Assembly (NCBI RefSeq): GCF_001194135.2
Contig: NC_068988.1
Coordinates: 58,356,923 to 58,398,743, forward strand
DNA: 41,821 nt
Direction: 5' to 3'
From: Octopus bimaculoides
Taxonomy: Eukaryota
The notes below the pieces were generated by a model that made no database searches, was not told where the DNA came from, and worked only from the letters and a program-made list of their open reading frames with translations. Below, piece after piece: positions 386 through 39,375 of this stretch (position 1 is its first letter; each line of letters opens with the position of its first letter). The translations under genes and the position numbers were made by a program.

Positions 386-1626
386 GTATATCATGTCGCG
401 GTTTCAAATGAAAATTTGACACAAATGAAAATTAAATTAAAGATAATTTGCCAACATAACGTGGCAGTCCCGGTTGGAACGAATGCTACTGTTATTTAGT
501 CCCAGGAAACATCGTCTCCAGCTGGCTATACGACACACTATTTGTGTCCTTATATTTTCGAAGAGGGGAGTTTAGCATCCTCACTCAACACAAAACAATA
601 TCTGTGGATCGCGGTTCCACGCTGCAATTGTTTTTGTTTCAGCACACGATCTCAAATCAAGTCACTTGCTATGCAAGTATATCTCCGTAAAATAATAACA
701 GTTGTTCGCAATTAAAGGTGGAATTATTGAAACTTGAATTGAATTCTGTCAGCTGTTATTCATTGTATTGTTTTAATAATATACTATTGTATCGAGTATT
801 GCATAACTTTGTTGTAAATTATTAAAAAAATATTGCAAAGAAGCTAATCCGAATACATGTGTGTATATGCGTGAGTATACATGCATACATACATACATAC
901 ATACATACATACATACATACAGACAGACAGACAGACATACACACGTACATAGAAATATTTATTTATCATTGAGTTGTACATTACTGTTTATAGCATGTAA
1001 CTAATCAAAATATTACCACCGGCTTGTCACCGACTATTGTTCTTAGACAATATTGACGATTCTTCATCGATATATAAAAATATAACCGCTCTATTACTCA
1101 TGTGCATTTTGTCTGACTTAGGAACAACTGATACACACATACACATGCAAACACATATTGGAGGAAATGGCTTTTGGTAAGCGTACAGAATAGTATATTG
1201 CTATAAGGTTAGTCACAAGAAATGAAGGAATTATTCGTCAGTTTATTTATATACTGATACAAAAAGTCTTCAAATGTTCCAGTGAAATGAAATAAAATGA
1301 AATGGAATAAAATAAAAGCAATAAAGTTATGTAAAATACGTAAAATATTTACTTTATTACATTTGAGTATTTTTCGGGAAATGATTGAAAATTCTTGTAC
1401 CCCTTATCTCTCTCTCCCCTCTTTCCCTTTAGACTATAATACTTATAGATCACTAATAATGAAGGAGCTACATAAAAAATATAAAATTATACAGATATAA
1501 CAATTTAAAGTAATATATAATTATTATTGTATAACAATTTAAAGTATTATAATTGATAATACTAAGTGGACTTTTCCTTTTTCTCTCTCTTTTTCCTTGT
1601 GATGTAATCTCGGGACTGAAAATGTT

Positions 1627-1725
1627 TGTGGCTGAAGATAGCTTTAAACGATCCTTTGTATCAACAATATATACTGATATATATACTGACAGTTTGTATA
1701 TAAAGCTTGAAACACGTGTATCGCG
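1627..1725 (+). ncRNA. Type I hammerhead ribozyme motif (long stem II, palindromic stem III)
   Basis: UGUGG-CUGAAGA(1632-1638)-U-AGCUUUA...UAAAGCU-U-GAAA(1709-1712)-CACGUG-UA^UCGCG. Core intact; stem II 7 bp; stem III ACACGUGU is a perfect palindrome; stem I 5 bp, three of them G.U. Confidence 0.75.
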
Positions 1726-1861
1726 ATATCCTTTGTGTTCTGTTTTCAATTTACGTTTAATATATATATATATATATATATATGTATTTCTGTATATATT
1801 ATATATATATGTCTAGGTATGTATATATGCATATGTACGTATGTATGCATGTATGTATGTA

Positions 1862-1918
<57 letters not shown>

Positions 1919-2959
1919 GTGGATGTAGAAAATGGTGTAGTTACATTCGTATTACATATGTTTCAAAGGAAAACTGAACGAAAGTTATGTAGATTTAAGG
2001 TCTTCCTGATAACGAACTTGTAAACAACAGGTGTAAGTACCCGAAGAAAAGGGAGGATGAAGCTGAGTATATATGTAATACCTTAAAGTTACATAACTTC
2101 AATTCTCTTTTCCTCGCAAACATATGAAATATCTACTCAATTCCCTACATCTACCGATCTATAATCAAATATTTAGCAAGTTTTGTTAATATTTATTGGA
2201 GTTGTATAGTGGCTGTCAGTTTATCGGAATCTCTGTGTAATTTGATACGGGACGAAGTGTATGACATACGTTGTTCAATACATTTTATTGATCGAGTATT
2301 AACCACTTTGTGATATCTATGCAGCTGTGTCTATGTTTGGGGCTCACAAACTGCCTGTACCATGACCCTAAAATACTATATATATTATATATATATATAT
2401 ATATNNNNNNNNNNNNNNNNNNNNNNNNNNNNNNNNNNNNNNNNNNNNNNNNNNNNNNNNNNNNNNNNNNNNNNNNNNNNNNNNNNNNNNNNNNNNNNNN
2501 NNNNNNNNNNNNNNNNNNNNNNNNNNNNNNNNNNNNNNNNNNNNNNNNNNNNNNNNNNNNNNNNNNNNNNNNNNNNNNNNNNNNNNNNNNNNNNNNNNNN
2601 NNNNNNNNNNNNNNNNNNNNNNNNNNNNNNNNNNNNNNNNNNNNNNNNNNNNNNNNNNNNNNNNNNNNNNNNNNNNNNNNNNNNNNNNNNNNNNNNNNNN
2701 NNNNNNNNATATATATATTGAAGGAAAATAAGGAGAAGAAAATGCAGAATAAATGGATGTAATTACTGATTTATTTGCATGTTATAAAAAGATGTCGTTT
2801 TTGAAAAAAAAAAATTTCATATAAATTGATTGGAAGTTGAAAGCTCAAAAAAGTTAAGATAAAAACAGAAAAAAGAACGTATATATATGTTTCAGTCGCC
2901 GCATCTAGATGTTAAAACATTTTTTAACATCATCGGAACGAATCTGAAATATTAAAACG

Positions 2960-3490
2960 AAAAAAGATAATAATTAATCAAGCACTTATCTTGAGCAAAA
3001 TGCAACCACATAAGCTAAGGAAAGTATTAACAAAGGCAAAATTCAACATGAACAAACCGGATAACACGTTCACAGTATTTAAATGTAATGATAATAAATG
3101 TAGAACATGTAAATACATTAATACGGGTAGATCCATTAGAACAAAAATTGGACAGATTTTCGCAAGTGCAGATATGAACTGCAAGAGCAGAAATTTGATC
3201 TGCTGCATTAAATGCCCGAATTGCGACATATTATATATATAGGCGAGACAGGGAATACATTATCGGAACGCTCACGAGTCCACAGACAACAAATCCAGAA
3301 CACCAATGTTCGCCAAATTCCATTGAACGAACGTACAGAGACATGTAGTCAGAAAATGTTTCTAATTTTTCCTTTCCACAAACTACATGACGCAAGTGGG
3401 GTTGGAAGAAAGATAAAAGAAAAACGATTTATAAAAATATTCAAACCTGTTCTGAATGGAAATAACAGCAATAATATAACAACCAGTTAA
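2960..3490 (+). mobile_element. Penelope-like element remnant: Cys-rich linker plus GIY-YIG endonuclease, frameshifted
   Basis: KCNDNKCRTCKYI...MNCKSRNLICCIKCPNCDILYI/GETGNTLSERSRVHRQQI...KIKEKRFIKIFKPVLN; frameshift in the TA run near 3240 joins ORFs 2991-3242 and 3212-3490. Confidence 0.9.
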
Positions 3491-4655: not shown

Positions 4656-5122
4656 GTCTCCCAACGATTTCATTCCCAGCACATTTCTTAGCTCTGTATA
4701 TGGCTTGCAAAGTAAATGCTTCTATGATATTTCATTTCACAAGTCATGACTACTTCTTTCTTTTCAGCATCTATCGTATATGATTTACACCTTAAAAAAC
4801 TGTTAAAATTATTATATTATTATATAGGCGTAGGCATGGTTTTGTTGTTTATAAGTTCGCTTTGTAACAACGTGGTTTCAGATTCAGTCCTACTGCGCGG
4901 GCTCTTAGGCATGTTAATGACCTGTAGGGACACCAAATTTTGTTATGCAAGCATAATATACTACTCATACAAAGCGTTTAATATACTTTATAGTTAAGAG
5001 AGTATTGTAGTTCGCTTGAAGCATTGTGTATTGTTTGTAAAGAATAAAAAGTTTAGTGAGGTATAACAATGCACTATAGAACAAAAAATGGACTATATAC
5101 CTGTTGTAACTTGGTTATCTAT

Positions 5123-5165
5123 AGTCCGATGATATTTCGGAATTAGAATTCCTTCTTCAGAGACT
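5123..5165 (-). ncRNA. Minimal type I hammerhead motif in the left arm of the inverted repeat
   Basis: AGUCU-CUGAAGA-A-GGAAU(UCUA)AUUCC-GAAA-UAUCA-UC^GGACU; stem I 5 bp, stem II 5 bp, extra A after A9. Confidence 0.7.
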
Positions 5166-5179
5166 CCAGCAAATAAGAT

Positions 5180-5217
5180 CTGAAGAAGGAATTCTAATTC
5201 CGAAATATCATCGGACT
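5180..5217 (+). ncRNA. Hammerhead motif in the right arm, lacking the 5' strand of stem I
   Basis: CUGAAGA-A-GGAAU(UCUA)AUUCC-GAAA-UAUCA-UC^GGACU; the inversion breakpoint falls immediately before C3. Confidence 0.55.
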
Positions 5218-5482
5218 ATAGTTTACCAAGTTACAACAGGTATATAGTCCATTTTTTGTTCTATAGTGCATTGTTATACCTTTCTAAACTTTTTATTCTT
5301 TACATACTTTATAGTATATTATGTCTGCATAATGAAATATTGTGTCCTAACAGCTCATTAATGTTTACGTACAAGCTTCCAGGAATGTGTTTACTATGTA
5401 AAATTGGTCTATCCAATAACGTTACACCACTATATTTAGTGGCTGTTCAGGCAATGAGTTCGTGGACGATTAATGGGTTGGT

Positions 5483-5599: not shown

Positions 5600-6235
5600 A
5601 CATAAAGTTAAAGTCTGGTTATAGAGTGACCAATGGTTTCGTATCCACCAAAGCTACAGCCTTGTGGACAGCTCATCAGACTCTATACAAAGACAAATTT
5701 AACTTTTTATCTCGCGGAGGCGGAGAAATGCTAGGACAAAATGTTCAAACGGCTTACATAGAAAAAAGTTGAGGACGGGTTTTCTTCTCTTGACTAGAGG
5801 ATAAATGGAAGCTAAGATCAATTTTCCAGTAAGTAGCGCTTGAAATGAACACATTTTGAGAAAATTTGTTTACGATTATTTAACGTGCAAGGCTTAGCAC
5901 AGTTTTTAAGAACTTTGGTTCACTCAGCGATGCAGATTTTGCAGCGCCCTCTCCCATTAATATATGGGCCTGGATGTTCTACGATTTTCCATCTGATATC
6001 ATATGGAGTCCTTTGATCTTTGAGGTGCCACACATGGCAAACCGTCTTTTTGGGACTCCGAAGGATGACTGGTGGTTACAGTATTTTACTTCATTCTTTG
6101 ATCATATATCTTCCGTTATTGTTCATATCAAGTACTTTGATTCTTCAATTTGTCTGAGCGTCTTCCTAGCTATTTCAATTCAATCGACTATTTTGTTCAC
6201 GTTTTCCAACTGTTTTTTATCATTTTTCTTTTCAT
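5600..6235 (-). mobile_element. Penelope-like element 3' remnant (decayed GIY-YIG C-terminus plus 3' pLTR)
   Basis: Minus-strand reading with stops and frameshifts: KYCNHQSSF.../HVWHLKDQRTPYDIRWKIVEHPGPYINGRGRCKICIAE*TKVLK...TLNNRKQIFSKCVHFKRYLLEN*. This resembles the HIWxLKD...W...CxLC..E...LN.R.E..SKC.H tail of PLE endonucleases. Not in the ORF track. Confidence 0.82.
5620..5687 (-). ncRNA. Canonical type I hammerhead ribozyme in PLE pseudo-LTR
   Basis: UAUAGAGU-CUGAUGA-G..GUCCAC-AAGGC(UGUA)GCUUU-G-GUGGAU-AC-GAAA-CCAUUGG-UC^ACUCUAUA; perfect 8-bp stem I, G10.1-C11.1, GUC site; about 130 nt downstream of, and in sense with, the PLE stop codon at 5818-5820. Confidence 0.88.
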
Positions 6236-6584
6236 CACTTATTTTAATTCTATATCTTCTTGTATTTGTATTGAGATAAGTTGATAAGATCTCTAACTTC
6301 TTCCTTATTTTGTCTGATTAAATCAATATCATGGCAAAACGGAAATTACTGACATCTCTGCAATTATTTTGATATTTCATACAGCTAACTCAAAGCCGCT
6401 CATCGTTATATATTCTAGAAACACATTGAAATAAGACTGTTGAGAGAATACACCCTTGTCTGACACAAAGTGTTGTTTTAGACCAGTTATTTGGGGAATT
6501 TACAACCAAAGCCAATCTTTCTATAAGTATATTCCATATATAGAACATCGAACTAAGAGGTGCGTTAGGAAAGAAATTACTGGG

Positions 6585-6720
6585 ACGCGTGTGGGGTTGA
6601 GAAGCTCACTATTGCGTGGCACCTTGGGAAAGTGTTGTCTACTGTAACTCCTGGCCAACCAATGCCTTGTGAGTGAATTTGGTTGATAGAAACAGCGTAG
6701 AAGCCTGTCGTATGTATGTC
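6585..6720 (+). mobile_element. tRNA-type SINE, family A head
   Basis: TTGCGTGGCACCTTGGGAAAGTGTTGTCTACTG...GCCAACCAATGCCTTGTGAGTGAATTTGG...AGAAGCCTGTCGTATG. Confidence 0.8.
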
Positions 6721-10355: not shown

Positions 10356-10450
10356 GTTTGTCCGCTGCCAAGCTACTGCATGATCATGGTCTTAGTGTCA
10401 AGCTCCTCGAGGCCAGGGATCGCGTTGGAGGACGTACATTCACGATATAC
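10356..10450 (+). CDS. MAO: Flavin monoamine oxidase, exon equivalent to vertebrate MAO exon 2 (FAD-binding Rossmann fold)
   Basis: ttttgctttcag|GT...TAC|gtaagt; 95 bp, phase 1 to 0; (G)[31 protein letters not shown] versus human [36 protein letters not shown]. Confidence 0.96.
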
Positions 10451-16469: not shown

Positions 16470-18830
16470 CTGGTTGATACCAGACGAAAATATTTAATCA
16501 TAGAAAAGAGCGAAGACGAAGACTTCACTACTTACATAGGCAGAGTCAGCTAAGAATGTGAGAGATTTAAGCTGGATAGTGCTTACTCCAGATTCTTTCA
16601 AGTGTTTGATTTTTGTACAAGGATTGGCAGATAAAAATTATGCAGAAATCCAAACGAAAAAAAATCTAGCAAACTGGAAATGAAACCGAATTTCACATTG
16701 CAGAAACTGACGGAAGAGTGTAATATGATATTAAAATTAAGGCATGACACAGAAGAAATTCAACGGAAAAAGTGTTTTCGCATAAGACTAGTGTAAAAAA
16801 ATAAGTTGGAAAACAAATAGTGTTGCAGGAAAAACGGAAAAAATATCGGGATGTAGACCCATGTATGGCATGTGGTGGGATGCACCTGAAAAAAGATTGT
16901 CCGTATAAAAAAGCAAAGTGTTTTCCCTGCGGGTTCTCACTGCAAAACTAGAATGATTGGAAAATGGAACAAACAAGAAAAAATAAATAGTTTGACTGCA
17001 ACAAACAGGAAATATGTGAATGTGAGAATTGAAACCACTAGTGTCTGAATGCAATTAGACACGGGAAATAACACCACAATCATAAATGAGAAAACATGGG
17101 AATAAATGGGTAAATCACAATTATGTAGTATAAACAAAATAGCGGGAAGAAAATTATATTACACAGGCGAAAGCGTTTGTAATATAATGCTTAAAGGTCG
17201 AACCAAAAAACTGAATGTTTATGTGTTGAAAAATCCATGAATTTCTTTGGCATCGAATATATGGAGAAATTTAATTTATGAGATACACCCATAAGCGTTT
17301 TATGCGATAACGTAAACGGAGCAGTCAAACGAACGAACGAATGAGGTCATGAACTGGGACAAAAAAATAGAAGAAACTTTCCCAAAAGTTTTTTCGGAAT
17401 GTCTAGGCTGTTGCACAAAAACAAAAGCAAGGATTGCTATCAAAGAAAATTCAAGACCTATTTTCAGGCCCAAACGGAACGTGCCGTTTGCGGCGGTAGA
17501 CCAGGTCAATAAAGAACTAGAAAAGTTGGAAAGCCTGAATATAATTGAAAAGATTGATCATGCAGACTGGGGAGCACCGGCGGTCTACGTAAAATATTAA
17601 AAAAATAAGCTAAGAGTGTGCGCAGACTTCTCAACCGGATTAAATGACTGTTTATTCACACACAACGACTCACTACCAAGCCCAGAAGTATTTGCTAAAC
17701 TAAACGGAAGGAAAATTTTCTCAAAGTTAGACTTCTCGGAGGCATACCTTCAAATTCAGTTAGGAGAAGATTGCATACATCCAGAACAATCAACACGCAC
17801 CGTGGTTTGTACAAGTTCAAACGATTACCGTTTGGAGTATATGTGGCACCCGCTATGTCCAACAAATAATGGATGCGATGGTAAGTAATTGCGACTTTAC
17901 CATCGCATACCACGATGACATTTTGATAAAGAGCCAGTCTTGGGTGCAACACGTCGAATACATAAAGAAAGTATTGGAGAGAATAAGTGAATACGGGCTA
18001 AAACTGACAGAAGCAAAATGCGAATTTTTGACTGAAAAAATAAAATACCTAGGTCAAGTAATTGACGAAAGTGGACGCAGACCGGACCCATCAAGGGCGA
18101 CGGCAATACGAAATATGCTGCCCCCGACGAACATGACAATGTTACAAGCATTCCTAGGCTTGGTAAATTGTTACCAAGTATATATCCTAAATATACATAA
18201 GGTAAGGGCACCACTTAATTACTAAAAACAAATGCCAAATGGATTTGAAGAGAGAAATGCCAGAAAGCCTTTAATGAGTTAAAGATATGTTAACTTAAAA
18301 CTTGTATCTTAAGCATTTCAACCCAAAGTTAGAGATAATACTAGCTACAGATGCTTGCGAGTATGTGATAGGAACCGCTCTCCTACACAAGGATAACGAT
18401 GGCAAGAGAAGGCCATAGCTTACACATCAAGGACATTATTGCCGGCGGAAAAGAGCTATAACCAGATTGAAAAAGAGGCGTTGGTTATTATATTAGGCAT
18501 GAAAAAGTTCCACAGGTTCATTCATGACAAACGTTTTTGGTTGCAAACAGACCATAGACCTCTAATAACGATATACGGATCCAAGACAGGAATCCCGACA
18601 CATACGACAAAAGCGGTGGGATAACATTCTGTTAAACTACGGTTATAAAATTGAATACCTGCTTTCAAAAATGTTGGGGCATGTCGATGGTCTGTTTAGG
18701 TTAATTCCGAGAAATAAGGAACCGCTGGAAGACACCGTAGTAGCAGCGTTAAGAGCGGAAGCGGACGCAAAACAAGTGATATGGCGCATCGTACGTGAAT
18801 TACCAGTAACTTTGGAAGAAAGTGTCTGAT
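16470..18830 (+). mobile_element. Ty3/Gypsy LTR retrotransposon gag-pol remnant (Mag/K02A2.6-like), many stops and frameshifts, no integrase or LTR seen
   Basis: Gag EDEDFTTYIGRVS*ECERFKL..FKCLIFVQGL; zinc knuckle CMACGGMHLKKDCPYKKAKCFPC at 16862; protease MQLDTG (17049-17066); RT RPKRNVPFA..DWGAP..CADFSTGLN..FSKLDFSEAYLQI..AYHDDILI; RNase H ATDAC..YNQIEKEAL..TDHRPL. Confidence 0.95.
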
Positions 18831-20207: not shown

Positions 20208-21545
20208 AATTGACAGGATTTTTTTCCTGTTTGTCAACTCCTGGAGAATTGTATCGCATAGCTCTTCAGCAGGTCTTTGTCGATTTAATAAAATCCTTCG
20301 ATACTGTTTATAGGATCTTTCTTTGAATCAATTCATCTCAAATCGTCCACTTGTTTAAGCGGCTCAGTCGCAAAATGAAAGTTTGGTTTTACTTTAACGG
20401 TTCACTTTCGAAACTAATTTCCATCGATAACTCTCTTTTTCTTCATATATTTTACTGTAACTATCTCGTACGCCCCCGGAACAGCAATATAGGCGTGTAC
20501 AATCGCATCAGAGCCACAGGTAAAATCTTTGATGTAAGACACTTCAACGCAAACTCGAATAATTTCCACTCCTTTGTTCATGAACTCCTTTATGCTGACA
20601 ATGTAGATCTCGTTACGCACATCGAAGCAGACATGCCGGTTATAATGGATCTCTTCTCTAGAACATGCCCCACTTTTGGACTTACCATCAGTCTGAAGAA
20701 AGAAAAAGCCATGCTACATGTTCTCTCCGCCTTCAGGCCAGTTCTATAGCGATCTGATCTTAACGTCTTCGTCCAGGATACATGGTTGGATATGATCTAA
20801 TATTTCGTCTACGTTGGCTGCAGTCTTCCTAGAGACGGATCACTTGATTCTGAAGTAAATCTGAAGATCGAAAAAGCCAGCAGTCTTCGAAAAGCTCGAA
20901 AAATCATGGTCTGAGAAAGATATCATCTCCAAAACCAAACTCAGCATCTACGAATAAAACACCTTAACTACCGTTTTGATGCTTGGACTAAGTATCATTA
21001 TCACATCAAAGCCTTGAAAGAATTCTATGAAGCTTGTCATAGAAGGATCTTAAACATCTAACGGCCGTCTCTGATTTTAGAAACTGTTGTTTTTCAGTGA
21101 GTCATCACATCGAGTATTGAAATGCCCCTCAGATGCATTGGGCTAGGAATCTTATTAGGATGCAGGATGACAGGTTATCTAAACAGTTGTTTTACGGCTA
21201 GTGACAACATGGTAAACGTTTAAAACATAAACCCAAGAAACGTTGTAGAGATTTCGTCAAAAACAACCTTAGGCTCTTAGTATGGATGTCGAAAAGTGGG
21301 AGCAGATGCTGGAAAATCGATCGGATTGTAAAGAAGTGATCTACAATAGTTGGAAAGCATTTAAAACATGAATAATTGAACACTATCATGGAAAGAGCAC
21401 TTCGTAAATGAGACTTTATTTCAAATCCCAATACTTTTCCGCCTGAACATGTATGTAACATCTGCAGTATGGTTTATTCATTCAAAGGTGGAATTGCTTG
21501 TCATATGAGATCTTATGGCGGCATTTGCTAATTGAAGGAAGGGCA
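20208..21545 (+). mobile_element. RTE-clade LINE, 5'-truncated and decayed RT plus C-terminal zinc finger
   Basis: FVDLIKSFDTV; HELLYADNVDLVTH...FSRTCPTFGLTISLKK; terminal CNICSMVYSFKGGIACHMRS. Confidence 0.9.
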
Positions 21546-24129: not shown

Positions 24130-24495
24130 TTATTAGAAAGCGAAAAGACTCACGTTATAACACGAAAACAGTGAAGTTTGGGGGTAAGAATCTGATGCTT
24201 TGAGGATACATAAAAAGTGATGGTTCAAAGAAAGTTGGTTTAAATTGACGGTAACTTGAATAGTGCCAAATATATCCATTTGCTGAAGGGAAATTTGATA
24301 CCAGACTTGGATGTAAGTGAGATTTTTCAGCATGACGGAGCTCCATTCCACAAATCGCGTGCAACACAAAGAAATCTGGCTGATGGTGTTACCGTATTGA
24401 AAGACTGGTCAGCTCAGAGTTCTGACTTAAATATCATCGAACAAATGTGGACAGAACTAAAGAGAAGAGTCCGTCAGAAGAATCCACGCAGTCCT
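24130..24495 (+). mobile_element. Tc1-like DD(E) transposase remnant
   Basis: NSAKYIHLL...IFQHDGAPFH...WSAQSSDLNIIEQMWTELKRRV (QxDxAPxH and WPxxSPDLNxIExxW motifs). Confidence 0.9.
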
Positions 24496-24785
24496 GACTT
24501 TCTTTTATACATCTATATCTGTAAACGGTTATATTTAATACATTTTTCGCTGTATTGTGTATTCATTACTTTTTGCATCAGTTACTTATTATTAATCTTA
24601 TATAAATCGAAGCTGCATCCTTTAATTTGCTGCTTTTCTATACACAAACCGAAAAGGTATCTTGTGGAATAGTCGTTATTTTAACGCAATGCATCTTGTA
24701 ATCACCTGAAGAAACACATCTACACCGTCGGATACTCCTAAACCAGTTGTTAAGTATATATACATATACATATATCGAGGGAGAA

Positions 24786-25178: not shown

Positions 25179-25316
25179 AATAAAGATGTCGACTATGAAG
25201 ATCTCGGCGGTGCTTATGTGGGACCCACACAAAATCGACTCCTACGGATGGCCAGAGAGTTCAACATCAAAACTCATCTGGTTAACGAAAAGGAAGATTC
25301 TGTGTTTTACAGCTCG
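25179..25316 (+). CDS. MAO: Monoamine oxidase exon equivalent to vertebrate exon 3
   Basis: T-tract..tcttatag|AAT...TCG|gtaaga; 138 bp, phase 0 to 0; [46 protein letters not shown] versus [33 protein letters not shown]. Not in the ORF track. Confidence 0.96.
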
Positions 25317-25945: not shown

Positions 25946-26789
25946 TATACTGTATTTTCTTTCTGTATATTGTGAATGGATGAACGTCCGCATGAAAAGC
26001 ATATCTGAACCCAGTCACGCACCAATTGCTAGTCTGTACAACAGCTGTCTTTTCGTTGCCTTTTCTATTGTTGGTTACTTTTGAATATCTCACCGTTGAC
26101 CCGACCCATATATTCACGCCTCTTCTTGACAAAAGACCACCTTACAGTAACTACTTCATCTTCTAGTCCTTTCAGTCCTTCTCCCAGACACTATTACTTG
26201 CTACATTTATCTCTTCTTCCCAAAGTTTACAACCCTTCTATATTCATATTTATGCAAACATTCATATCATCCGGATTCAAGGGAAGGATTGGCAGAGTCG
26301 TTAGAGCACTAGGTTAGCATATCTTGCAGTATTTGTTCCTCTTCACTGTCCTCTAATTTCAATTTTACCTTTTTTCCTCTCAGGAAGATGGGGGGCGGGC
26401 ATAAAAAAGTACCAGCTCAGCGTGGCAGATTGCTAGTACTGTGAGGACGTCTAACCGGATGCCTTGCAGTATTTGTTCCACCTCTTTGCAAGGCCTACTT
26501 GGGTGGCTACACTTAATACGTTGCCCAGTTTAACGCCGCCACCACCACCATCTGGAATGGTTTTCTTTTTCAGAGTTCATTCCTTTGCAAGCAACCGGGT
26601 CAAGACTCTAGTTTGAAGATGCGTTCTTCGTTTCCTTACACTGGTCTTGGAGGCTCTGTGAAAGATCAGGGGCGCTGCTTTCCACTTGACTAAAAGATGA
26701 AAAAAACCCCAAGACAAAACAATCCCATCTTCAGACAAGACCTAAATCTTCTATAGAAAATAAAACGTTTAAGAACCAAACTCAGAATA

Positions 26790-30124: not shown

Positions 30125-30620
30125 ATGATTTTGATGACTGCTGAATAAGTGACAATCAGACGGGGTAATGGGGGTTGGACATCGTTTCCCATTCAAACTA
30201 CGCCAGCCTTTGGAATGTCATCCTCGCTGTATGTGGCCGAGCCTTCTATTGGTGGAAGAACACCTTTCGTCTTGAAACCAGAGATAGTCATTTTTTCTTC
30301 TAGCGCTAACTTGGATGACTGGTTGAATGACCAAATCCAAGCTTCTCCGTTAGTTCCCCAACAGTTACGATAGTATTTTGTTCCACCAGGTTTTGCAGGA
30401 CGTCCTTGTCGAGCTCTACAGATCTTTCAGGACGAGGCTTGTCTTCTAGGTTGTAGTTTCCGGCTCGGAATTTCTGGAGCCACTGTTGACACTGGCTTAC
30501 GCTTATTGTCCGATCCGCATATACTGCATTAATATTCCTCGCACTTTCCGATGTCTTGTGGCCTTTATTGAACTCATGAATCAAAATATGCCGAATATGC
30601 TCCTTCAATGACACTCCTAC
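30125..30620 (-). mobile_element. mariner (Mos1/Hsmar-like) transposase remnant with a large internal deletion
   Basis: MSLKEHIRHILIHEFNKGHKTSESARNINAVY..QKFRAGNYNLEDKPRPERS.. joined near 30310 to RRKVFFHQ*KARPHTARMT..FEWETMSNPHY (HQDNARPH and HPPYSPDL region). Confidence 0.9.
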
Positions 30621-30994
30621 TATTCCTCATGAGGGAGTGAGAGTAATAGTAGGCATAGAGACGGTGAGGATGGTGGCGAAGACAGAGAGATAGAGATAGA
30701 TATAGAGAGAAAGAAAAAGAAAAGGAGAGAAAGAGTGAGATAAAGAAATTTAGGGAGAGTTCATGTTTTTCTAAAAGTAGTAGTGTTGATGGTGGCAGTA
30801 GGAGTAATAATAAGAGAGAAAACATGAATATGTAAGAGAAAGGGGGACTGAACACTGAAGTAACATGCTGAATAACATTCTAAACAAATACATGCATTTA
30901 GTCTTTTTGTGATAGTAATGGGGTGATAATAATAGTATGTGCTGTAGTTGTGATAGAGGCGGCGGTGATGACGGTGAGAGTAAACGATATGAAA

Positions 30995-32790: not shown

Positions 32791-32878
32791 TGCAGTACGC
32801 ACGTTTCATGCTACTCCATTTATTCAAGTAATGCGAGCATTACATTAAATGCAATATGTAGAGCAATCTTCAGCTGCA
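32791..32878 (-). ncRNA. Type I hammerhead ribozyme motif (long stem II variant), apparently intact
   Basis: UGCAG-CUGAAGA-U-UGCUCU...AGUAGCA-U-GAAA-CGUGCG-UA^CUGCA; perfect 5-bp stem I; 7-bp hairpin GUAAUGC/GCAUUAC inside loop II. Confidence 0.82.
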
Positions 32879-37323: not shown

Positions 37324-37425
37324 GGACATACGAAAAGATTTAGAGGAACATTCCCCAAAATGAATTTTCTTGCCTGGTTAGACGCCAACAATCTGTTCAG
37401 AACGATGGATAAGATGGCGGAGGAG
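37324..37425 (+). CDS. MAO: Monoamine oxidase exon equivalent to vertebrate exon 4
   Basis: ttttctttatag|GGA...GAG|gtaagt; 102 bp, phase 0 to 0; GHTKRFRGTFPKMNFLAWLDANNLFRTMDKMAEE versus MAOB [35 protein letters not shown]. Confidence 0.95.
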
Positions 37426-37467
37426 GTAAGTAAGCTACATGTCTTTCCCTCTTATTTATTTATTTAT

Positions 37468-37639
37468 TTATTTATTTACGTATTTCATTTCCTGTTTTTG
37501 ATATCATCGTTTACCTATCACCTCGTAATGGCGAGTCTCTTGCTGTTGAGCCCGTGCATCGTCGAACATATGCAATAACTGAATAGTTCCTTCTGTCTGT
37601 CTGTCTGCTTGTCTATCTGTCTGTTTGTCTGCCTCCCTG

Positions 37640-37736
<97 letters not shown>

Positions 37737-38108
37737 TTTTCGTTTCTACCGATTCCTTTTGATCGGATATTTTTTTAAAGAAAAGCTCTGCAGTTGTATT
37801 TGTCCCCTCTGTGTGCAGCCCTGTGTGACTAATAAAAGAAAGTTATCTATCTATTTCAGGAATTAAACTCAGAGGTAAAATGCATGTCTAAGTATTCACA
37901 TGATCGCAAACGTTGTCTGTCTCTAAGCCTTTTTCGCATTAGTCGTAACATGTCACGTGATGGATATTAGTGCAGGTTACTGATGTGAGACACGTGTATT
38001 ACACGAATGTAAGGGAAGCAACGACACTGATATAAAATTTGTTTAGCAACAGAATAAGTTATGCATATTCATTTCTTAGGTACTTTTTCGATGCCTAAGC
38101 GATATATG

Positions 38109-38139
<31 letters not shown>

Positions 38140-38370
38140 NNNNNNNNNNNNNNNNNNNNNNNNNNNNNNNNNNNNNNNNNNNNNNNNNNNNNNNNNNNNN
38201 NNNNNNNNNNNNNNNNNNNNNNNNNNNNNNNNNNNNNNNNNNNNNNNNNNNNNNNNNNNNNNNNNNNNNNNNNNNNNNNNNNNNNNNNNNNNNNNNNNNN
38301 NNNNNNNNNNNNNNNNNNNNNNNNNNNNTATATATATAAAGTGTAGTATATTGCCACTTAAGTGTGGCTG

Positions 38371-38429
<59 letters not shown>

Positions 38430-38601
38430 CAGGGAGGCAGACAAACAGACAGATAGACAAGCAGACAGACAGACAGAAGGAACTATTCAGTTATTGCATA
38501 TGTTCGACGATGCACGGGCTCAACAGCAAGAGACTCGCCATTACGAGGTGATAGGTAAACGATGATATCAAAAACAGGAAATGAAATACGTAAATAAATA
38601 A
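37468..38601. repeat. Perfect inverted repeat, arms about 37468-37698 and 38371-38601, in MAO intron 4
   Basis: About 170 bp of unique sequence plus (CTAT)n are exact reverse complements; an N-gap (38140-38328) lies between the arms. Confidence 0.92.
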
Positions 38602-38833
38602 TGTATGTGTGTGTGCGTGTGTGTGTGTGTGTGAAAGTCTTTGTGAAAATTGCTTTATGCAGTTTTTAAGTATTGGGTCATCTCATAAATAATGCGTTTT
38701 TTAAATTGCATGAACTAAAAGTCGGAGGGGGACGGAATAATTGATACATATGTGTTGGTAATATAAATAAATGTAAACCAGCATATATGTATCAATTATT
38801 TTCGCATCTTAACCGATGCATCTATCTATATTC

Positions 38834-38884
38834 GCATTCTGAAGAGATTTACTTAAACCAGTAAATTGAAACGGTCGTAAATGC
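38834..38884 (+). ncRNA. Compact type I hammerhead ribozyme motif, sense to MAO pre-mRNA (intron 4)
   Basis: GCAUU-CUGAAGA-GAUUUACU(UAAACC)AGUAAAUU-GAAA-CGGUCG-UA^AAUGC; perfect 5-bp stem I, 8-bp stem II (G.U at 10.1/11.1), stem III ACGGUCGU self-complementary with G.U pairs. Confidence 0.86.
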
Positions 38885-38985
38885 TACCCTCATCTCCGCT
38901 TCTTCCTCCTTTGTTATCTACTTAATTAAAGGCATACCAGCGAAAACCAACAGTTTTCCATTGTTATTATATCCATTTTCTTTTC

Positions 38986-39025
<40 letters not shown>

Positions 39026-39156
39026 ATTTCGCTTAAACATTTCGTGACTAATAATCTGGTATATAATTCTATATACATATGCTTCAAAACATATAAGCAT
39101 ACGAATACATATAGATATGTATATAATATCTTATTATCTCATTATATTCTGTATAG

Positions 39157-39248
39157 ATCCCAATATCTGAACCATGGAAAGCTCCAAAAGCACAACTGTG
39201 GGATAAAATGACTTTGAAAGACTTTTATAATGAAACCATCTGGACAAA
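39157..39248 (+). CDS. MAO: Monoamine oxidase exon equivalent to vertebrate exon 5
   Basis: attctgtatag|ATC...AA|gtaagt; 92 bp, phase 0 to 2; IPISEPWKAPKAQLWDKMTLKDFYNETIWT versus MAOB [30 protein letters not shown]. Not in the ORF track. Confidence 0.95.
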
Positions 39249-39375
39249 GTAAGTAATCGGATATCTTAATATTTATATAGACTGCGTGCCTGTCTAGTTT
39301 TTTCACTCATGAAAAACCTATGCCATTTTAATCCCGAGCAAGGCCGGGTATCTCTGCTAGTATATATATGACACG

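Follow-up and report, generated by a model that had tools for sequence, protein, structure and literature searches.

The hammerhead ribozyme motif on the sense strand of intron 4 of the MAO gene of Octopus bimaculoides (38834-38884, + strand) is probably a solitary, functionally silent motif of transposon origin. All positions given here are those of the window, the whole stretch of 41,821 nucleotides of contig NC_068988.1 that was analysed. The candidate is filed as a transposon-type minimal hammerhead (min-HHR) of the Penelope-like element (PLE)/retrozyme kind, and within that kind as a variant; it is not a proven fragment of a PLE terminal repeat. A PLE or retrozyme origin of this particular copy is likely. 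As its flanks show no sequence homology to any PLE or, beyond a weak local alignment, to the other motifs, and no second copy of the surrounding segment was found in the window, the transposon assignment rests on motif-level similarity and on context.

Position in MAO and anatomy of the candidate

Exons 2-5 of MAO were located by tblastn with human MAO A as the query, and occupy approximately 10356-10450, 25179-25315, 37324-37425 and 39157-39249 of the + strand. Their splice sites are canonical, including the donor of exon 4 (GAG/GTAAGT) and the acceptor of exon 5 (...tgtatag/ATC), and the translation of the joined exons aligns unbroken to human MAO A (2z5x, E = 3e-49). Exon 1 was not found in the upstream part of the window. 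A search of exons 2-5 against a collection of 5.8 billion proteins yielded no close orthologue, the best matches being fish and spider fragments at 58% identity. Exons 3-5 alone, used as a protein query, yielded no close relative sharing 5-mers, and exact look-up of the open reading frames over exon 5 yielded no match.

Intron 4 spans 37426-39156 and contains an N gap (38140-38328). Around this gap lies a perfect inverted repeat of 231 bp (37468-37698 and 38371-38601, 100% identity), the left arm of which starts 43 nt past the exon 4 donor site. The repeat is either a gap-related assembly artefact or a very recent inverted duplication, which leaves the actual length and organisation of intron 4 in doubt. 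The cut site of the candidate lies 277 nt upstream of the start of exon 5 at 39157, so that the placement given in the original prediction, on the MAO-transcribed strand of intron 4, agrees with the exon map. The accompanying claim that the remaining motifs between exons 2 and 5 are antisense was borne out as well, with one motif at 32791-32878(-) in intron 3 and a poor one at 26656-26738(-).

Read directly from the + strand, the 51 nt of the candidate consist, in order, of GCATT, CTGAAGA, GATTTACT-TAAACC-AGTAAATT, GAA, ACGGTCGT and A^AATGC, where the caret marks the predicted cut. Helix I is open-ended and helices II and III are closed, which is the type I topology. The 5' strand of helix I (GCAUU, positions 2.5-2.1; 38834-38838) pairs with the 3' strand (AAUGC, positions 1.1-1.5; 38880-38884) through five Watson-Crick pairs, and inspection of the helix I flanks revealed no internal loop and no closing stem. 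The hammerhead core is complete, comprising CUGAAGA, GAAA, the A15.1-U16.1 pair and GUA. The first box, C3 U4 G5 A6 A7 G8 A9, occupies 38839-38845, and G12 A13 A14 occupy 38868-38870. A15.1 and U16.1 are found at 38871 and 38878, and H17, the A of the GUA triplet, is found at 38879, with the scissile bond predicted at 38879/38880 by position arithmetic. The full core, the perfect stem I and the cut position that had been predicted were thus all recovered on direct reading.

Helix II (GAUUUACU / AGUAAAUU, 38846-38867) encloses loop 2, UAAACC, at 38854-38859. It had been described as a stem of 8 bp, and this count stands if the closing G10.1.U11.1 wobble is included; counted as Watson-Crick pairs, the helix has seven, and it lacks the G-C pair by which helix II is usually closed. 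The helix III segment, ACGGUCGU, spans 38871-38878. In a monomer it would form ACG-GU-CGU, with 3 bp and a 2-nt loop, which is sterically marginal. In a homodimer all eight positions pair (8/8, two of them G.U), as the segment is near-palindromic but not perfectly so. The earlier description of a stem III that is marginal as a monomer and paired as a dimer therefore holds.

Statistical standing of the motif

A strict descriptor was defined by the core together with at least 5 bp in helix I, at least 6 bp in helix II and at least 3 bp in helix III. The candidate is its sole match in the window, while Markov shuffles gave an expectation of about 0.0007 matches per window. When the core of the descriptor was replaced by composition-matched scrambled cores, none of the resulting decoys matched the real sequence (0/539). 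A relaxed min-HHR descriptor returned six motifs in the window, compared to a decoy mean of 0.19 and a maximum of 3 among 539 decoys, an excess of hammerhead motifs of about 30-fold. The candidate motif is very probably not a chance occurrence.

Searches with Rfam models (RF00163, RF00008 and RF02275-7) left the candidate unmatched at the gathering score, at E <= 10 over the whole window and in a 121-nt search. As the near-canonical hammerhead at 5620-5687(-), which served as a control, was likewise missed, the Rfam negative for the candidate is uninformative.

Other hammerhead motifs in the window

The six motifs matched by the relaxed descriptor lie at 1626-1726(+), 5123-5165(-), 5176-5224(+), 5620-5687(-), 32791-32878(-) and 38834-38884(+). 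Three motifs fall on each strand, so the sense orientation of the candidate is not special.

Three of the six, the motifs at 1626(+) and 32791(-) and the candidate, follow the pattern CUGAAGA...GAAACNNNNGUA. The motif at 1626-1726(+) consists of UUGUGG, CUGAAGA, a helix II of 70 nt, GAA, ACACGUGU and A^UCGCGA, followed by (TA)n. The motif at 32791-32878(-), which is antisense in MAO intron 3, consists of UGCAG, CUGAAGA, a helix II of 59 nt, GAA, ACGUGCGU and A^CUGCA. Common to all three are A7, U11.1 before G12, C15.2-G16.2, an 8-nt near-palindromic helix III and GUA, and these shared traits are not demanded by the descriptor. Helices I, II and III vary in sequence across the three motifs yet stay paired, with helix III segments of ACACGUGU at 1626, ACGUGCGU at 32791 and ACGGUCGU in the candidate. 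Judged by sequence, such shared traits in combination with covarying helices are the pattern of a ribozyme family and not a coincidence. Helix II inserts are of unusual length in the motifs at 1626(+) and 32791(-), at 70 and 59 nt. The immediate flanks of these two are also alike, and each stops about 50 nt short of a (TA)n tract; by these features the two motifs look like the 3' ends of one element family inserted in TA microsatellites.

The motif at 5620-5687(-) is a near-canonical type I hammerhead with CUGAUGA, G10.1-C11.1, GUC and a helix I of 8 bp. An internal loop follows helix I, and beyond it a 9-bp closing stem (AAAGTTAAA/TTTAACTTT) extends the structure out to 5602-5706; helix III is ACC-AUU-GGU. 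This hammerhead adjoins (TG)n, and is much better formed than the candidate despite being Rfam-negative. The two remaining motifs belong to a 161-nt palindrome within 5080-5260, each arm of which carries one min-HHR core (- strand, 5123-5165; + strand, 5176-5224); the two cores are arranged head-to-head on opposite strands. The arms are 88% identical, and each contains CTGAAGA-A-GGAATTCTAATTCC-GAAAT, in which the extra nucleotide after A9 and the G10.1-C11.1 pair correspond to the published Penelope-element signature.

Predicted folding and expected activity

As a monomer, the candidate is predicted to reach a hammerhead-like fold at -4.2 to -5.4 kcal/mol, compared to -9.0 kcal/mol for a misfold in which the CUG of the core pairs with the helix III strand. 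When folded in a context of 201 nt, the 3' strand of helix I (38880-38884) pairs with 38780-38793 instead of with its hammerhead partner. Helix II is the one helix kept across all predicted folds. A 65-nt hairpin with 24-nt arms that are 92% complementary lies at 38736-38800(+), 34 nt upstream of the candidate; its matches to miRNA families are weak and at chance level. Part of the 3' arm of this hairpin is predicted to compete with hammerhead helix I.

The homodimeric helix III of the candidate was predicted at -5.8 kcal/mol for the 8-mer and -7.8 kcal/mol for 15-mers, corresponding to roughly 3-80 uM. Of four motifs compared, the candidate has the least stable dimer helix, at -5.8 versus -8.8 to -10.3 kcal/mol. 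Heterodimers were also considered. Both pairing with the 1626 motif and pairing with the sense-strand complement of 32791 were rejected on inspection, as the helix III strands are non-complementary in the middle. Little or no cleavage is expected of the candidate, since it has no partner, a weak monomer helix III, no tertiary contacts, no G10.1-C11.1 pair and more stable competing folds.

Flanking sequence and mobile-element context

The candidate lies in a unique, AT-rich segment of 352 nt (38634-38985, + strand; 32% GC) that is bounded by (TG)n and (CTAT)n, the boundaries being inferred. This segment possibly represents the extent of a truncated element or of a solitary monomer. No second copy of it was found in the 37 kb of sequence in the window, and no compatible second sense copy of the candidate was found in intron 4 or within 33 kb. 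No tandem copy of the segment was detected either; the adjoining 130-170 nt show no residual similarity, with an alignment below the shuffle mean. A direct repeat at a spacing of 172 nt, considered under a tandem-repeat or retrozyme reading of the segment, proved to be microsatellite only.

The flanks of the candidate show no homology to the element at 5620 and no sequence homology to any PLE. Compared with the elements at 1626 and 32791, they give a weak local alignment (z about 2) and no BLAST match. A metagenome scan with the motif pattern returned 0 matches, and an open reading frame across the 3' flank of the candidate returned low-complexity matches only when compared with representative proteins.

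Elsewhere in the window, a frameshifted relic of a Penelope-like GIY-YIG endonuclease (CxxC...YIGETG) was identified at 2928-3487(+), with a Pfam GIY-YIG match at E = 0.0017 that is below the curated cut-off; further hammerhead motifs lie beside this relic. Two ENA proteins match it at 69-73% identity, one of them with PF01541. They are encoded on the only two ENA contigs returned by the endonuclease query, metagenome contigs of 515-661 nt, which are too short to contain a terminal repeat and are presumably host DNA of a related animal. Other mobile-element fragments lie at 17316-18826(+), 30309-30626(-), 24244-24669(+), 20327-20746(+) and 6393-6605(-). They include an HTH of the mariner Mos1 type (E = 2e-18), Ty3/BEL-like pol of retroviral type (RVT_1, E = 2e-12; RT_RNaseH, E = 1e-15), a piece of DDE_3 transposase, and LINE-like reverse-transcriptase bits that were identified by eye only. 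A total of 4554 N in the window is spread over 14 gaps, and tracts of (GATA)n, (TG)n and (TA)n are plentiful.

Comparison with known hammerhead systems

The closest published counterparts are the min-HHRs of metazoan PLEs (Cervera & de la Pena 2014, PMC4209133; Lunse, Weinberg & Breaker 2017, as cited in PMC6765202). In these, helix II measures 7-8 bp and helix I 4-5 bp, helix III is palindromic and tiny, and loop 1 is absent or poorly defined. They occur by the thousands per metazoan genome, mostly as single motifs described as 'probably truncated PLEs' (PMC4209133). Single copies showed no detectable cleavage in vitro, and dimers showed low cleavage (PMC4209133). PLEs themselves favour microsatellite targets (PMC8557442). 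The candidate resembles these ribozymes in its type I topology and full CUGANGA/GAAA core, in its helix II of 8 bp and helix I of 5 bp, and in a near-palindromic helix III of very short length, from which dimeric action is predicted. It is also a dispersed single copy beside microsatellites, in a window with a PLE relic, and has no recognisable loop-loop contacts. It differs from them in carrying the G10.1.U11.1 wobble in place of the highly conserved G10.1-C11.1 pair, although 1626 and 32791 also have U11.1, and in lacking an unpaired nucleotide between A9 and 10.1; counting the G after A9 as this additional nucleotide would leave an unpaired U opposite. Further differences are that no PLE terminal repeat or open reading frame is tied to this copy and that the related motifs at 1626 and 32791 have helix II inserts of 59-70 nt.

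Non-LTR retrozymes of animals (Cervera & de la Pena 2020, PMC7229834; Li et al. 2026 preprint) are likewise AT-rich units of a few hundred nucleotides with one type I hammerhead and a short helix III. Monomeric derivatives of them are scattered through genomes, introns included, and they share descent with PLE terminal repeats. Unlike the candidate, for which no tandem copy exists, these units form tandem repeats, and their hammerheads are canonical, with a helix I of 6 bp, a helix II of 4 bp, contacts between loop 1 and loop 2 and efficient self-cleavage. The candidate has the minimal architecture instead, with its 8-bp helix II and a helix I that has neither internal loop nor closing stem. 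The hammerheads of newt satellite 2 and of salamanders (Forster et al. 1988; PMC7229834) share with it a helix III that is too short as a monomer and a palindrome that allows a double-hammerhead dimer. Those ribozymes reside in tandem arrays of 330-350 bp, which provide a partner in cis, and they keep their loop-loop contacts, whereas the candidate is solitary.

The original prediction drew an analogy to intronic hammerheads of other animals, and the candidate does share with HH9 and HH10 a type I motif on the intron sense strand of a protein-coding gene and a thought derivation from retroelements. HH9 and HH10 are reportedly conserved amniote hammerheads in introns of RECK and CTCL, a finding attributed to a 2010 study (de la Pena & Garcia-Robles). 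The analogy fails on tertiary-contact architecture, as HH9 and HH10 are canonical, have tertiary contacts and are conserved at orthologous amniote sites, while the candidate is minimal. No match to the HH9/HH10 models (RF02275/RF02277) was obtained at E <= 10 in the 121-nt search.

Origin of the motif and alternative explanations

The favoured explanation is that a minimal type I hammerhead of the kind found in PLE terminal repeats or non-LTR retrozymes was left in MAO intron 4, the element having presumably inserted between microsatellites. In the life cycle of such an element, the near-palindromic helix III strands of two tandem motifs (ACGGUCGU in the candidate) would pair with each other and form one long intermolecular helix III with two active sites, by which the multimeric element transcript would be cut. 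This pairing and cutting step is taken from the literature (PMC4209133, PMC6765202, PMC7229834). A single copy in MAO pre-mRNA, having no partner, would be predicted to have no effect on MAO expression. A silent relic of a transposable element had been offered in the original prediction as a fallback, and it is favoured here on the set of six motifs, the PLE relic in the window and the min-HHR architecture. Besides the lack of flank homology, two further observations run counter to it: an intact core is somewhat unexpected in an old neutral relic, and two published hallmarks of PLE min-HHRs are missing from the candidate.

Two other explanations would likewise leave MAO out of account. It is unlikely that the 352-nt segment is a live non-autonomous element, a retrozyme or SINE-like monomer whose hammerhead would process element transcripts in trans and independently of MAO. 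Its length and 32% GC fit the size and composition of metazoan non-LTR retrozyme monomers, which measure about 170-400 nt and are low in GC (PMC7229834), its core is intact, and monomeric derivatives are scattered genome-wide in Xenopus (bioRxiv 10.64898/2026.07.22.740005). Against this reading, there is no tandem repeat, no residual similarity in the adjoining 130-170 nt and no second copy in 37 kb, the segment boundaries are inferred from microsatellites only, and the canonical, loop-contacting hammerheads of retrozymes are not of the candidate's type. A chance match, in which CUGANGA and GAAA boxes flank an AT-rich hairpin of a low-complexity intron by coincidence, is rated as quite improbable. 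A/U-rich hairpins like helix II are indeed common in this sequence, 12 CTGAAGA heptamers occur in the window, and extrapolation of the per-window rates to an assumed gigabase-sized genome gives roughly one to tens of matches of equal quality genome-wide. The lack of an Rfam match and of any homologous copy in the window, the metagenome motif scan or the representative proteins points the same way, although the Rfam negative carries no information. Against chance stand a per-window probability below about 0.002 under two independent nulls, the 30-fold surplus of hammerhead motifs in the same window, and the optional traits (A7, U11.1, the 8-nt near-palindromic helix III and GUA) that the candidate has in common with two other motifs.

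The remaining explanations give the motif a role in MAO expression. The proposal that cleavage, depending on concentration or splicing rate, severs MAO pre-mRNA and so controls monoamine catabolism found no support, given the balanced strands (3:3), the weak dimer, the competing folds and the missing second copy. We regard as very unlikely a domesticated, cis-acting ribozyme that cuts MAO pre-mRNA in intron 4 and thereby lowers or re-routes MAO mRNA, which would act as a dimer of adjacent nascent transcripts, or with help from a host chaperone. Its intact core on the transcribed strand and its fully paired homodimeric helix III are compatible with such a role, as are the conserved intronic hammerheads of amniote genes, which have been proposed to play a part in mRNA biogenesis (PMC6155905, PMC6765202); by our own estimate, the local concentration of nascent RNA on a heavily transcribed gene could near the micromolar range. 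The orientation of the motifs provides no signal, with 3 of 6 on each strand, and the candidate has no tertiary-contact elements, a G.U wobble where G10.1-C11.1 is usual, competing predicted folds and, at about 3-80 uM, the weakest dimer helix of the four compared. Min-HHRs are moreover nearly inactive in vitro (PMC4209133), and slow intronic hammerheads leave splicing intact: in the studies summarised in PMC2995048 (Dye 2006, Fong 2009), intronic hammerheads did not block splicing in vivo and only a fast ribozyme did. Of Xenopus retrozyme copies, 42-44% are intronic, though retrozyme-type elements are depleted in introns compared to intergenic DNA, which suggests a cost and not co-option (bioRxiv 10.64898/2026.07.22.740005). 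Least probable is a co-opted sensor of transcription rate, in which dense bursts of MAO transcription would lead to ACGGUCGU pairing and to a cut in intron 4 ahead of synthesis of the 3' splice site. The partners would be neighbouring nascent transcripts or abundant family RNAs in trans, with which double hammerheads would form; if this were true, MAO output, and with it monoamine breakdown, would be under negative feedback.

Significance

As a silent relic, the candidate belongs to an expected background, as many animal genomes contain PLE and retrozyme min-HHRs by the thousand, a large part of them in introns. Evidence of conservation and of cleavage in vivo would be required before it could bear on whether intronic hammerheads regulate host genes. 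Annotation of such motifs calls for descriptor searches with decoy-core controls, since both the candidate and its near-canonical neighbour escape the Rfam hammerhead models. The local variant, with A7, U11.1, an 8-nt near-palindromic helix III, GUA and a helix II of 22-70 nt, would extend the catalogue of min-HHRs if it recurs genome-wide.
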